Source: Salpingoeca rosetta
Taxonomy: Eukaryota > Protista > Choanoflagellata
Reading direction: 5' to 3'
DNA: 64,000 nucleotides
Assembly (NCBI GenBank): GCA_033442325.1
Contig: JAWQFM010000016.1
Coordinates: 1,221,679 to 1,285,678 of the forward strand
Part shown: positions 11,389-15,683 of the stretch, piece by piece
How the letters are laid out: every line of letters begins with the position of its first letter
How positions within the stretch are numbered: the first letter of the stretch is position 1
Position numbers and translations under genes: made by a program
The notes under the pieces: model-generated
Seen by the model: the letters and a program-made list of their open reading frames with translations, nothing else
Databases searched by the model: none
Told to the model about the DNA's origin: nothing

Positions 11389-14300
11389 CTATGAAGACGA
11401 GAGCGATGCTGGCCGAGGGCGTCGCGGTCGGGAGGGGACTGGAGGCGGTGGTGCCTCTGATTCGCTGGAACTGGATGCCCGAGCAGCCGGGCTCGTGGGA
11501 GTGAACACAGCCTCCTGCCCACGGCCACTGCCACTGCCAGCCGATGACGTGGATAGCCTGGACGACGACACCGGCCCGCGGCTGTGCCGCTGCACGCCGA
11601 CGCCACGCGGCACATCGTAGCCATCGGCAGTGCTGGCCGGCCGTTGGCGGCGAATACCACTCGGGCGCAGCTGAACACCGACAACTGGCTGCTGCTGCTG
11701 CTGCTGCTGCTGTTGGCGCAAGTGCTGCTGCTGTAACATGGCCTCGTTCGTATATGTGCCAGCATCGTCCTGCAATGACACGGTGCGGCGACGTGGTGCA
11801 AGCGGGGGCGGCACGGAAGACGCTGGCGACGACGCCGATGAGGAGGCAGAAGGCGACAGGTCCACCACTCGCGGCACATCGTATGACTCATCTTCACTGA
11901 GTAGGCCGGCCGTCGTTGCACTTGTTGATGGCGCAGTTGTGCTGGTGGATGGTGAGGTAGGAGCTGGCATGTTGCTGTAGTGATGCGTGGTTACGACTGG
12001 CTGCTGCCTCTGTTGTTGTTGTTGCTGTTGCTGTTGCTGTTGTTGTTGTTGTTGCTGCTGCTGTGGCACCACGCGTGGGACGTCATAGTTCCCGCTTGCC
12101 TCTGCGCCAGTTGTGCAGGGCGCGTGCGGTGATGATTGCACTTTTGGCACGTCGTAGTGGTCATCATATATCACATCCTCATCCGCACCACCTGTCGAAG
12201 GGCGCTGCTGCTGCTGTTGTTGTGGTTGCTGCTGTTCTTGTTGTGGTTGCTGCTGCTGTTGTTGTGGTTGGTGTTGTTGTTGTTGTGGGTGTGGTGTTGG
12301 TCTTGATTGCGTCTCGCGAGCCTGTGCGACTGGCTGTTCGGTGGCGTGCGTGGCAGGCATTGAAGATGGCATGACACGCGAAGCCGTCACACTGCGAGCA
12401 CGGGTTTCTCCACCGTCCTCCGTGCTTGCAGGCACAGGGTGGCTGCCGCGTGCCGCCAACTGTGGTCGTTGTCGTGAATGTGCTCGAGAGCGTGGCTGTA
12501 GGGTTGCGCTCTTGCTGCCCAGAGCCGGCACTGCTGAGAACTGATGAGTGTCAAAATGTCCACTGTGCCGCTGTTGTTGTTGCTGCCGCTGCCGTTGTTG
12601 CTGATGCTGTTGCTGCTGTCGTTGTTGCTGCTGTCGATGATGGGGGCCGTTGCTGGGCCGAGATGTGGTTGTGCGTGCACGAAGGCGAGGGCCTGCGGTC
12701 CCAGCTGCTGTCTGCGGCACTGGGGTGTGGGCTTGTACCGCAGACATGGGCTGATCCGTGTCGGATGGCTTATGCAGCACATTGTAGTGGGTGCTCGTGA
12801 GGTGCACCTTGCCCTTGCGCAGGGAGTCGTACTTGCTTGGTGCGAGGTCCAGCCCTGCCCCGCCGGATACAGCACTGTACGTGCTGTCTGCGGTCCAGCC
12901 ACCGCCAGCGGAGCTGGTAACCGTGCGGGCGCGACTGCCTGCAGGCACGTCATCATACAGCACGTCAGCGTCCTGGGTGCTGTGGTGGGCGCCGGCTGTT
13001 ACAGCTTCAGGCAAGCCTGTGCCTGTGCCACGCCTGTCGACAGCGAACTCGTGATACGCAACCTCTGTCGTGTCACCCCGGCCGTTGGAGGGAACATCAT
13101 CGTAGTCTTCGTGATATACATCACCCAAACCAGGAAGGTTCTCCAGCACGCCTGCAGGCACAAACGCCTCCTTGTGGTCAAACCCGCCCTCGCTGTCTCG
13201 CAGCATGTATCTTCCGCCGACGATTTCTTCGTCATAGCCCATGTTCGCACCAGGCAGCGCCGCTGACGCCGCATGCATGTGGACGTCACCGTCACCGCCA
13301 TAATGGCTCACGCTGCCAAGCAGCTCGTCCTCTGGTAATTGAGTGTGCTGCTGCTGCTGATGCGGCTGCTGTTGTTGCCTATGCCATGTTTCGGAGAGCT
13401 GCTTGGAGTTGACGTAGCCATCATGCGCCGTGATGCCTGTCCTGCCTGCGCCGTTGCCTGCATGGATCTGATCCCTGCCCTTCTGCTTTGCGCTGAGTTG
13501 TGGCGATGGTGGCAGATGCGCGTCCCCGTAAACCGATTCCGGCAACGGCTGTGGCGCGCGGGACAACGTGTTTGTCTTGGACATGGTGCCATTCGCATTC
13601 CCAGCATCTGTGTGTGTGCGTGTGTGCGTGTGTGCGTGTGTGCGTGTGAGTGTGTGTGTGTGTGTGTGTGTGTGTGTGTGTGTGTGTGTGTGTGTGTGTG
13701 TGTGTGTGTGTGTGTGTGTGTGTGTGTGTGTGTGTGTGTGTGGGTGGGTGGGTTTTTTTTGTGTGTGTGTGTGTGACAGAAATGAACCTCATACAGGGAG
13801 GTGGACAGAGACGCAGACAGAGACCCAAAGAAACAGATACACTTGTACCGAAGGTGGGGTTGTGATGGACTGTAGTTGGCGCAGCCGCTGAGGGTGAAGT
13901 GGAATGCGGAACGGAAGACGAAGACGAGGATTCTGGTGGAGGAAAGACTGTGCGGAGCACATGCGATGCCTTGCCCTTGCGCTTGCGCCGCATCATGATA
14001 ACAGCGCCCACAACGAGTGCACATGCGACAAGCGCGCCAACAACAGCGCCAACTATGACACCCGTGTCGCTGCCACCGCCACCGCTCCCGGCAGGGATCG
14101 GGTTGCTGGTGGTTGCTGTTGTTGTCGCTGTTGGTGCTATTGTTGTTTGGGTGCCCGCTGTGGTCTGGCCTGCAGACTGCTTGCAAGCAACATTGGAAGC
14201 AGGGAAGGTAACACACAAGCAAGCCAGCATGCGCAAACGTGAGCAAGTGTACGTGACTCATCGTGAGTGGCAAGCGTGTATGTGCTTGTCGGAGCACATG

Positions 14301-15683
14301 GCACATATTTGACACAATCACCACCATAATGTGTGTGTGTGTGTGTCGCACCTGACAGGTTGTGTCTGCGTGCCACATCGACATGGGAAGACCGGAAGAA
14401 CCGGCGTTCGGGTGCATGCGGGGGAAACATGCGCGACGGGGTCAATGATGTGTCAGCCACTATCAGTTGAGCGTGAAAGCTGTGAAGCAAGTTACAGATC
14501 GCAGATCCACACACACGAGCACAACACACCCACACACCGTACCTGTGTGCATGAAGGAGATTGTGATGTTGGCGAGGTGTTGCTGGTGACGGGTTACGTT
14601 GAAGAGATTGATATGCCTGCTGCCCTGCTCGCCAGTCAAGACAGCGCTGCCACCCGCAATGTTTTCGCTCGCAGAGTACAGGCTCACATTCAGAGACGTC
14701 ATGTTTCCCTGTATCAGTGGATATACCAAAATGGACACATGAGGCGGTGTGAAATGCTGTCATCTAGGGTACGAGCCGCCATCGAGTGAAAGAGAAGGAA
14801 GGGAACGGGTAGTGGACAATAAAAAGATCAAATGGCTTCACTGCTGCAGCAAGTGCTGCTTGGAGCTGCTTGGAGCTGCTGCTGCTGCTTGGACCTGGAC
14901 GCCTGATCCCGCCTCTAATCCTCTAGGAAATGCATGATTTCACGCTGAACGCACGCACACACACACACACACACACACACACACACACACACACACACAC
15001 ACACACACACACACACACACACACACACAACGCACCGTAGTTGTGATGCAGAGGGCAGGGAGTGGCTGCGGCCACTGTGCTGTTGATCTTGTGGCGTTGA
15101 GGTCTGTGTCTGCTGTTGCTGCTGTCGTCGTGAACATCCCATCGTGCTGGGTTCCCCCGGCGCTCTGGTTTTGCACCACAGCAAACTGCAAGCGCACCCG
15201 TGGATGGCTGTATGCCACAGCGTTGGATATGGCACTGGCACTGATGTTAAACAGCATCAGCTCCCGAGCTACACCAAAATGCAAGTGACGGTCGAAACGG
15301 CAGTGTGAGCGAGAGTGAGAGAGAGAGGCGTGAGCACGTGACGCGCGCCAGCCAGTGCAGTCACAAACGGCAGCCATGGCGTGCACGCGCAGGCCGTGAA
15401 GCAAATCAAGCACGCATCCGTGTACATGCGAGCAATGATACACAGTCATGTCATATCACACCACTCCAGACAGAAATCAAAATGCCTGTGGTGCACCCAT
15501 CAGTGCTGCACTCTTGCACTCGATACAATGTCGTGCTCTCTGCTTTAGTCAAGCGAGCTTGGGCTGGCTGTGTTCACACGCGAACTCACCTCTAGCGCTA
15601 TCAAGTGTGGTAAGGACGATAGCGAGTGTGACCACCATGCTGGCCAGCGCTGCCGCTGCGGACACGCGCTTCCGCGACACCAT
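11389..15683 (-). CDS. Single-pass type I membrane protein with no catalytic domain and a long, disordered, tyrosine-motif-rich cytoplasmic tail (Cas/LAT-like adaptor)
   Basis: Signal peptide MVSRKRVSAAAALASMVVTLAIVLTTLDSA (exon 15683-15590). Ectodomain exons carry many N-x-S/T sequons, then a Thr-rich stalk, TM GVIVGAVVGALVACALVVGAVIMM and stop-transfer RRKRKGK (~13970-14060). A phase-1 intron leads into the 731-codon ORF 11389-13584. Some ectodomain splice choices are uncertain. Confidence 0.8.

Follow-up and report, generated by a model that had tools for sequence, protein, structure and literature searches.

Transmembrane (TM) proteins of Salpingoeca rosetta that carry cytosolic YxxP arrays were described in 2016 (Shigeno-Nakazawa et al., PMC5043372). 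In that study, pYDVP-R phosphopeptides from one of these proteins, PTSG_05573, bound the SH2 domain of M. brevicollis crka1 in ITC, and a crka gene was found to be present in S. rosetta (PMC5043372). Choanoflagellates also have orthologues of SRC, ABL and FAK, and the substrates of their large tyrosine kinase repertoire are essentially unknown (PMC5043372). For comparison, the substrate domains of metazoan Cas proteins carry 6-25 YxxP motifs (PMC5043372).

We analyzed a gene located on contig JAWQFM010000016.1 of S. rosetta, within a stretch of 64,000 nucleotides (the window, to which all positions below refer). Its product shares the descriptive features of the 2016 class, which is not a homology family, namely a TM segment, several cytosolic YxxP motifs and no kinase domain. 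Judging from the domain content and identifiers given in Tables S5 and S6 of PMC5043372, the gene is absent from these tables, and it is apparently a further, unlisted member of this class of candidate Crk-docking proteins. A preliminary description of the locus had inferred a transmembrane scaffold that fuses a Cas-type substrate domain to a novel glycosylated ectodomain. This concept is not new; since the class had already been published for S. rosetta (PMC5043372), the gain is incremental. With the second-densest YDVPR array of the genome, a small orphan ectodomain and an adjoining receptor tyrosine kinase gene, the locus provides a clean candidate tyrosine kinase substrate and a small system in which to ask whether Crk-type docking on membrane proteins is older than animals.

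Gene structure and transcript evidence

The locus is a real, transcribed gene of six exons on the minus strand. All splice junctions of the six-exon model are GT-AG, and the frame is preserved when the exons are joined in silico. The features of the gene are as follows.

5' UTR: up to at least 15761, minus strand; X4 contig 13 spans 15590..15761
Exon 1: 15590..15683, minus strand; start codon at 15683; signal-peptide-like N-terminus with RKR followed by a 19-residue hydrophobic core
Exon 2: 15036..15268, minus strand; 77 ectodomain codons; first Cys; three sequons (NIS, NQS, NAT)
Intron 2: 14709..15035, minus strand; canonical GT..AG; 74-nt (GT)n tract at 14956-15029; retained in X4 RNA-like contigs
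Exon 3: 14543..14708, minus strand; 55 ectodomain codons with sequons NMT, NVS, NVT and NIT; donor at 14543 used in X4 contig 12
Micro-exon: 14352..14365, minus strand; 14 nt; acceptor gcag, donor gtgcga; restores the frame and adds DTTCQ, which contains the second ectodomain Cys
TM exon: 13849..14176, minus strand; Thr-rich mucin-like stalk, TM helix, basic stop-transfer RRKRKGK, Ser-rich segment and NPTF
TM helix: about 13991-14062, minus strand; within the TM exon
NPTF: 13853-13864, minus strand; end of the TM exon, about 45 residues past the helix
Intron before the tail exon (the fifth): 13608..13848, minus strand; 92-nt (CA)n tract at 13650-13741; removed in an RNA-like contig
Last exon: 11389..13607, minus strand; cytoplasmic tail of about 739 codons, Gln/Ser/Pro-rich, 19 Tyr, predicted to be disordered; stop codon at 11389-11391

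Transcript evidence came from the RNA-like contigs of one public run (X4); such contigs drop minor isoforms. Contig 13 joins 15590 to 15268 (exon 1 to exon 2), and contig 12 runs from 14543 through the micro-exon to 14176 and from 13849 to 13607, which links the TM exon directly to that of the tail. The preliminary description had staked its reading on the splicing of the TM exon to the 731-codon exon, and this join is seen in the X4 RNA-like contigs.

The micro-exon was missing from a simple gene model and was revealed by the RNA-like contigs. Contig 12 contains 11 extra letters between 14543 and 14179, which match 14365..14355; the remaining CAG is ambiguous between its two sides.

The proposed exon chain is seen in RNA-like contigs from exon 1 to exon 2 and from exon 3 through the micro-exon and the TM exon to the tail, whereas the junction between exons 2 and 3 (15036|14708) was not found among the X4 joints listed. 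Both X4 contigs extend into the (GT)n repeat of intron 2, over 34 letters in contig 12 and 29 in contig 13, just as the X1 genomic contigs do; the remaining four introns have been removed cleanly. Because intron 2 is retained in the sole RNA assembly inspected, the joining of exons 1-2 to the TM and tail exons is a prediction. Retention of the intron would truncate the reading frame beyond residue 109, which counts against a receptor or docking function. Read-through of intron 2 was also considered and was rejected because stops are present in all three frames. Two deep raw RNA runs (X13 and X14) showed zero depth on the unique parts of the gene and reads on CAG/CA repeats only; they neither confirm nor refute the gene model.

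Membrane anchor, ectodomain and tail

The signal-peptide-like N-terminus has a mean hydropathy of 2.23, and the 21-residue TM helix (hydropathy 2.88) is followed by RRKRKGK, with all YDVP sites downstream of the helix. A Pfam scan of four coding pieces (the 14-nt micro-exon is too short to scan) detected no kinase and no SH3 domain, no hit for exon 2 and no domain in the tail; the TM exon gave only sub-threshold matches, to Mid2, Podoplanin, Syndecan and Mucin15. These data support, at the sequence level, the earlier view of a kinase-less single-pass membrane protein with a predicted type I topology. In addition, 7 of the 10 Asn residues of exons 2-3 are in N-x-S/T sequons (P=0.0007), suggesting that the ectodomain is glycosylated, as had been proposed. 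Ectodomain and stalk together comprise about 170 residues, and no Cys occurs after the TM helix. Own-genome searches with exon 2 and exon 3 returned the gene itself and polyQ-centred noise only, and thus no paralogue of either exon.

The tail open reading frame (731 aa at 11389..13584, minus strand, in the ORF list) contains 19 Tyr and 102 Gln residues (14%) and carries CAG/CAA repeat families. Its motifs, all on the minus strand and with residues numbered along this frame, are given below.

YDVP(K/R) array, 11608..12156: four copies of YDVP at residues 477, 500, 568 and 656 (12145-12156, 12076-12087, 11872-11883 and 11608-11619)
YDDVP, 13090-13104 and 12943-12957: residues 161 and 210
Repeated D-x-D-V-[IL]-Y-D-D unit: copies at 12949-12972 and 12160-12183
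YxN sites: YVNS at residue 57, YSNM at 536 and YTNE at 611
ITIM/ITSM-like sites, 12775..12885: STYSAV at residue 236, SKYDSL at 252 and THYNVL at 267
PPPLAPRRR, 11785-11811: residues 592-600, a PxxPxR proline motif
PPPPVPSRPRRP, 11416..11451: residues 712-723, a C-terminal PxxPxR proline motif

A recount of the tail reproduced exactly the 19 Tyr and the YDVP, YDDVP, YxN, ITIM-type and proline motifs that had been listed previously, and NPTF was also present as described. Motif numbers were compared with those expected from 20,000 composition shuffles of the tail. YDVP was observed four times (0.006 expected), so the array is non-random, and YD nine times (1.0 expected), i.e., Asp occupies the +1 position of 9 of the 19 Tyr residues. 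Smaller excesses were seen for YD.V (2 versus 0.06, P=0.001), Y.N (3 versus 0.33, P=0.003), Yxx[LIVMF] (7 versus 2.6, P=0.008), the ITIM pattern (3 versus 0.5, P=0.013) and PxxPx[RK] (3 versus 0.55, P=0.016), the weaker of these P values being soft because local composition is ignored. The 55-Mb genome contains 148 YDVP-coding strings, four of them in this gene, and 31 YDVP[R/S] strings, of which the gene has three; its YDVPR cluster is the second largest, after that of PTSG_05573. The four YDVP copies differ in codons and flanks, which implies that the motif, and not a repeat unit, is conserved. A recent internal duplication was considered as the source of the array and was rejected, given the different codons and the fact that the only non-CAG DNA repeats are 25-27 nt long with 76-78% identity.

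The tail looks disordered, as had been suggested: in addition to the absence of a Pfam domain, a single-sequence AF2 model predicted polyQ helices only (mean pLDDT 37.9). The gene appears to be an orphan and its product contains no recognizable domain. A HMMER search of 1.84 billion representative proteins with the tail found no relatives and not even the protein itself, implying that the S. rosetta genome was left out of this set; as disordered tails also diverge fast, the result is only moderate evidence for orphan status. Word-index protein searches with the whole tail and with residues 1-300 were blank, polyQ words swamping the candidates, the ESM Atlas feature search gave no usable match, and an exact look-up of the product found no record. 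Two tail segments used in the own-genome search matched themselves and polyQ-centred noise, and no paralogue was found. The word-index and HMMER searches provided no orthologue against which conservation of the tyrosines could be read, and this counts against a docking function.

Candidate docking function and alternative readings

We propose, with a probability of roughly one half, that the gene encodes a type I membrane glycoprotein whose tail serves as a multivalent phosphotyrosine docking platform. The full-length product would have about 1017 residues. A signal peptide would be followed by an orphan ectodomain (about 140 residues, two Cys, seven sequons) that is probably beta-rich, then by a Thr-rich stalk with one TM helix, and finally by an intrinsically disordered tail of some 790 residues that has no catalytic activity. 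The acidic-context tyrosines of the tail would be substrates of cytoplasmic or receptor tyrosine kinases, and the four pYDVP(R/K) sites may then serve as docking sites for crka (PTSG_05410), the choanoflagellate Crk orthologue, through its SH2 domain. The YDDVP, YxN and S/TxYxxV/L sites, together with the two PxxPxR motifs, could bring further SH2/SH3 proteins. Phosphorylation and each of these partners are predictions from motifs, and the putative Nck-, Grb2- and ITIM-type assignments of the preliminary description, drawn from two to three motif matches each, were overstated. The tail has four strict YxxP motifs, all YDVP, in addition to the two YDDVP; this number is below the metazoan Cas range of 6-25 (PMC5043372) and compares with 10 in PTSG_05573 and 15 in human BCAR1, which counts against a docking function.

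At least 60 SH2 matches were detected in the S. rosetta genome, including an SH2-SH2-PTP arrangement (G000:C6:484-488 kb) and an SH3-SH2-SH3 arrangement (G000:C14:1457-1459 kb). Grb2-like and Shp-like arrangements exist, and a crude scan revealed no evident Nck-type SH3x3-SH2 arrangement. Phosphotyrosine proteomics of S. rosetta was looked for in the p38 paper (PMC11984502), which held western blots and kinase capture only. Directly upstream of the gene, on the same strand, is a receptor tyrosine kinase gene (TK domain), whose stop codon is about 750 bp before the 5' UTR. A bolder and rather improbable idea is that the two genes form a pair of kinase and dedicated docking receptor, in which SH2 proteins of the Crk, Grb2-like and Shp-like kinds would gather on the phosphorylated tail and form a multivalent condensate at the membrane, as with LAT and nephrin. 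Circuits based on membrane-bound non-catalytic substrates are commonly regarded as a late innovation of animals or vertebrates; if such a pair exists, a unicellular relative of animals already has them.

Several features could also be accommodated by a mucin-like surface glycoprotein involved in adhesion or in the cell coat, in the manner of podoplanin, syndecan and Mid2. The tail tyrosines would then act without phosphorylation in sorting or endocytosis (YxxPhi and NPxF signals) or play no part in signalling, and the recurrence of YDVP would be a by-product of low-complexity evolution. The sub-threshold Pfam matches of the TM exon, the Thr-rich stalk with seven sequons, the excess of Yxx[LIVMF], the Gln-rich tail with its CAG/CAA families and the lack of an orthologue or paralogue showing constraint are consistent with such a protein. 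However, YDVP is not a YxxPhi motif, and four exact YDVP(K/R) sites with different codons and diverged flanks, against a near-zero expectation, argue for selection on the motif. Moreover, other TM proteins of S. rosetta carry YDVP in tails unrelated to this one, and the motif binds a choanoflagellate Crk SH2 domain in vitro (PMC5043372). We consider a mucin-like role possible but doubtful. It is unlikely that most transcripts keep intron 2, leaving as functional product something other than a receptor bearing the ectodomain of exons 1-2. Such RNA would be non-productive, or would yield a short secreted peptide and, at best, an internally initiated TM-tail adaptor of the LAT/PAG type. Besides the (GT)n tract entered as in genomic contigs, the removal of the other introns and the stops in all frames, the contig depth of 9 at the 5' end versus 20.7 at the 3' end agrees with this. 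On the other hand, intron 2 is canonical and preserves the frame exactly, exon 3 shows the same sequon enrichment as exon 2, which fits a single luminal domain, and the two Cys lie on opposite sides of the intron. The missing junction is missing among the joints listed in contigs that drop minor isoforms, and a protein initiated internally, at the exon 3 Met, would have no signal peptide and a start preceded by several upstream ATGs.

We regard it as highly improbable that the tail is truly homologous to the substrate domain of metazoan Cas/BCAR1 and has been joined to a membrane anchor. Its YDVP(R) core is identical to BCAR1 sites, given as 'YDVPR' in Table S5, and the authors of the 2016 study speculated on a remote relationship for similar proteins (PMC5043372). 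However, short linear motifs arise convergently, Pfam and HMMER searches revealed similarity to nothing, and not even the neighbouring YxxP tails were similar (BLASTP E>0.1). Of the defining features of Cas that can be tested, only the motif agrees with homology. The earlier label 'p130Cas-like' is justified for YDVP, but the protein is membrane-anchored, has only the four strict YxxP and lacks an SH3 domain, a Ser-rich bundle and a FAT-like domain; it is not a Cas family member.

Comparison with known phosphotyrosine scaffolds

Among described proteins, PTSG_05573 (F2UBL2; G000:C13:764469-765106, five MYDVPR sites) is also a single-pass, kinase-less TM protein of S. rosetta with a disordered tail and repeated Y-D-V-P-R in an acidic context. 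It differs in having its own DUF5011 ectodomain, a C-terminal SH2-like domain and a regular M-Y-D-V-P-R-S/N repeat, whereas the ectodomain of our protein is an orphan and its tail, which lacks an SH2 domain, has long polyQ spacers and, in addition to YDVP, PxxPxR motifs and YDDVP, YxN and ITIM-like sites; the two show no sequence similarity. PTSG_12435 and PTSG_12436, which are also among the genes of the 2016 study and are found on the same contig at a distance of 10-19 kb, encode TM proteins with Tyr-rich tails containing 9 and 5 YxxP, respectively, including YDVPR/K, YDLPR and YDNPR, but they have recognisable C2 or C2-EGF ectodomains and lie on the opposite strand. BLASTP of our tail against theirs gave best E values of 0.11-0.22, with nothing similar beyond YDxPR, and the own-genome search, with its self and polyQ matches, likewise revealed no sequence kinship with the published members.

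The resemblance to BCAR1/p130Cas lies in the clustered YDxP motifs within a disordered region, which in BCAR1 serve for Crk SH2 docking after phosphorylation by Src-family kinases (PMC5043372). Cas proteins differ in being cytosolic and in having an N-terminal SH3 domain, a Ser-rich bundle and a FAT-like C-terminal domain.

Nephrin (YDxV-Nck), LAT (YxN-Grb2) and ITIM receptors are enzyme-free membrane proteins whose disordered tails contain several SH2-ligand motifs. None of them is known to be homologous to the present protein. Nephrin has Ig/FN3 domains, whereas the ectodomain described here is an orphan. LAT-type adaptors have almost no ectodomain and a palmitoylated Cys; the present protein has neither the very short ectodomain nor the juxtamembrane Cys of the LAT/PAG type. 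What it shares with nephrin, LAT and ITIM receptors is a mixture of SH2-ligand motifs combined with proline motifs for SH3 partners, the partners in S. rosetta being predicted.

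Exon structure and membrane features

The gene is best described by six exons with canonical GT-AG introns, read in a single frame of 1017 codons that opens with the ATG at 15683 and closes with the stop at 11389.

Exons of the gene (window coordinates)
15683-15590, minus: exon 1
15268-15036, minus: exon 2
14708-14543, minus: exon 3
14365-14352, minus: micro-exon of 14 nt, flanked by gcag and gtgcga
14176-13849, minus: transmembrane (TM) exon
13607-11389, minus: tail exon
13584 to 11389, minus: 731-codon ORF of the tail

Sequencing run X1 is genomic DNA-like, with contigs uninterrupted across introns. 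Run X4 is RNA-like: its depth falls to zero over intron 1, and its contigs contain exon-exon joints. X4 contig 13 joins 15590 to 15268, and contig 12 passes from 14543 through 11 extra letters to 14179..13849 and then along the tail exon as far as 12257. The extra letters are 14365..14355, part of the micro-exon, which mends the reading frame, supplies the second ectodomain cysteine and would be overlooked in a by-eye model. The joint between the TM exon and the 731-codon exon, on which the preliminary description had made its receptor depend, is present in contig 12. No exon 2-exon 3 junction was seen in the X4 contigs. Contigs 12 and 13 both extend into the (GT)n of intron 2, by 34 and 29 letters, exactly like the genomic contigs; therefore, the intron-retaining form predominates in the X4 assembly. 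Intron 2 contains stop codons in all frames. A physical link of the signal peptide and first ectodomain exon to the TM-tail part is putative, and a single junction is missing from the proof of the receptor architecture. Of ~16 million raw reads examined from each of two deep RNA-seq runs, X13 and X14, none fell on unique parts of the gene, suggesting low or condition-dependent expression. (GT/CA)n microsatellites are present in two introns; the one at 14956-15029 (74 nt) lies in an intron retained in RNA-like contigs, and that at 13650-13741 (92 nt) in one that is spliced out.

The N-terminus encoded by exon 1 is basic and is followed by a hydrophobic core of 19 residues (mean hydropathy 2.23). 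The TM exon codes for a 21-residue segment (hydropathy 2.88) followed by RRKRKGK and preceded by a Thr-rich stalk. N-x-S/T sequons hold 7 of the 10 Asn residues of exons 2-3 versus 2.1 expected (P=0.0007). A Pfam scan of the ectodomain exons gave no match, and the TM exon gave mucin/syndecan-type matches only, all sub-threshold. The alternating hydrophobic pattern suggests that the ectodomain may be small and beta-rich, with a single disulfide.

The tyrosine-rich tail and its YDVP array

The ORF product is 14% Gln, abundant in Ser, Pro, Ala and Gly, and contains 19 tyrosines. Each motif listed in the preliminary description was found in its place.

Motifs of the tail (minus strand)
ORF residues 477, 500, 568, 656: YDVP
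ORF residues 161, 210: YDDVP
tail ORF: YVNS, YSNM, YTNE
tail ORF: STYSAV, SKYDSL, THYNVL
tail ORF: PPPLAPRRR and C-terminal PPPPVPSRPRRP
end of the TM exon, before the tail: NPTF

Hydropathy along the tail reaches a maximum of 0.58, and a Pfam scan of it found no domain. With the usual caveat of single-sequence models, its AlphaFold model (mean pLDDT 37.9, helices in polyQ runs only) is consistent with disorder.

Expected motif counts were obtained by shuffling the tail 20,000 times with its composition kept. Four YDVP were observed versus 0.006 expected, and Asp followed 9 of the 19 tyrosines versus 1.0 expected; neither value was reached by any shuffle (P <1 in 20,000). YD.V occurred twice (0.06 expected, P=0.001). 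Because shuffling disregards patchy composition (polyQ blocks), P values are soft for Y.N (3 versus 0.33, P=0.003), the ITIM pattern (3 versus 0.5, P=0.013) and PxxPx[RK] (3 versus 0.55, P=0.016); despite this, the YDVP enrichment is not soft.

Recent duplication was considered as a source of the YDVP copies. Non-CAG DNA repeats in the tail exon were limited to two pairs (25-27 nt, 76-78% identity); YDVPR is spanned by one of them, and a D-x-D-V-[IL]-Y-D-D unit by the other. Copies differ in codons, and also in flanks save for upstream acidic residues and downstream R/K-V/G. These differences and the scarcity and divergence of repeats rule out recent duplication. Genome-wide, YDVP-coding strings (148, any frame, 55 Mb) were fewer than those of a reversed-pattern control (273), and the tail exon holds 4 of the 148. 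YDVP followed by R/S occurs 31 times in the genome, with at least three copies at two loci only: G000:C13:764469-765106 (contig 13 of the S. rosetta genome) with five, and the present gene with three.

Neighbouring genes

The next gene upstream, also on the minus strand, encodes a receptor tyrosine kinase.

Features of the neighbouring kinase gene (window coordinates)
~21000-16509, minus: receptor tyrosine kinase gene
19617-20981: EGF and He_PIG-like ectodomain matches
19242-19547, 17796-18080, 16509-17486: PK_Tyr_Ser-Thr in three exons
18383-18592: assembly gap (N run) interrupting the gene and removing part of the kinase domain

Its product carries the signature PVRWMAPE and ends in a C-tail rich in Tyr (10 Tyr). 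Tyrosine kinases make up ~1% of S. rosetta genes; thus, this adjacency, though noticed post hoc, is suggestive. Downstream, an ORF with a Rap_GAP match (E=7e-7; 6355-7128, minus) was picked out only because Crk signals to Rap1 via C3G in animals. In a neighbouring transcript, expressed in X14 (depth ~13, single strand), position 10859 had G in place of A in 4/4 runs, DNA and RNA, and RNA reads contained a joint that leads 24 letters back at 10883, to 10860; a small error of the assembly or a tandem duplication may be the cause.

Relatives, candidate SH2 readers and published YxxP proteins

Two word-index protein searches were blank, swamped by polyQ. Searching the gene's own genome with exons 2 and 3 and with two segments of the tail returned self and polyQ noise only. 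Exhaustive HMMER comparison with 1.84 billion representative proteins gave 0 matches; as self was also missing, the S. rosetta genome evidently being left out of that set, this is moderate evidence of orphan status and no proof.

At least 60 SH2 matches were detected in the S. rosetta genome. Reader arrangements were assigned by co-linearity with SH3 and PTP matches, a crude exon-by-exon test that does not address orthology.

Co-linear domain matches (Cn, contig n of the genome)
G000:C6:484382-488270, plus: SH2-SH2-PTP, Shp-like
G000:C14:1457149-1458877, plus: SH3-SH2-SH3, Grb2-like
C10:761-764 kb: SH3-SH2-SH3, Grb2-like
C1:1585-1586 kb and C14:1552 kb: SH2-SH3, Crk-like

No Nck-like SH3x3-SH2 arrangement was evident by this test. 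The C6 locus and C14:1457149-1458877 are candidate readers of the ITIM-like and YxN sites, respectively.

Membrane proteins of this kind were already published in 2016 (Shigeno-Nakazawa et al., PMC5043372). PTSG_05573 from that study was re-found as the five-copy MYDVPR locus. A paralogue ~12 kb away (G000:C13:772500-780500, ORF 2767-7122, minus) has the same ectodomain blocks, three MYDVP(K/R) sites and LYEDV repeats. Another ORF (G000:C4:2268000-2276000, 3525-4835, plus), with 16 Tyr and 8 YxxP including two PYDVPRR, may be a further YxxP-tail protein unnamed in that paper; this exon does not include the TM segment. PTSG_12435/12436 lie on the opposite strand, 10-19 kb upstream of the window, and have tails without alignable similarity to the present one. 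Each S. rosetta entry of Tables S5/S6 (PMC5043372) has a C2, EGF, DUF5011 or SH2 domain, or another identifier. Our gene lacks these four domains, and judging by domains and identifiers it appears to be absent from both tables.

The preliminary interpretation is partly supported. At sequence level it holds for a predicted single-pass membrane glycoprotein that lacks a kinase and whose YDVP array is non-random. Its p130Cas likeness does not extend to kinship: the gene is no Cas family member, and BCAR1 orthologues are restricted to metazoans (PMC5043372). Its putative Nck, Grb2 and ITIM sites are motifs only. Choanoflagellates have SRC, ABL and FAK orthologues whose substrates are unknown, PTSG_05410 is a crka gene of S. 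rosetta, and ITC showed binding of the M. brevicollis crka1 SH2 to the PTSG_05573 phosphopeptides EM-pYDVP-RS and DM-pYDVP-RN (PMC5043372). Most likely, the non-random YDVP array would likewise dock Crk-type SH2 domains once phosphorylated.
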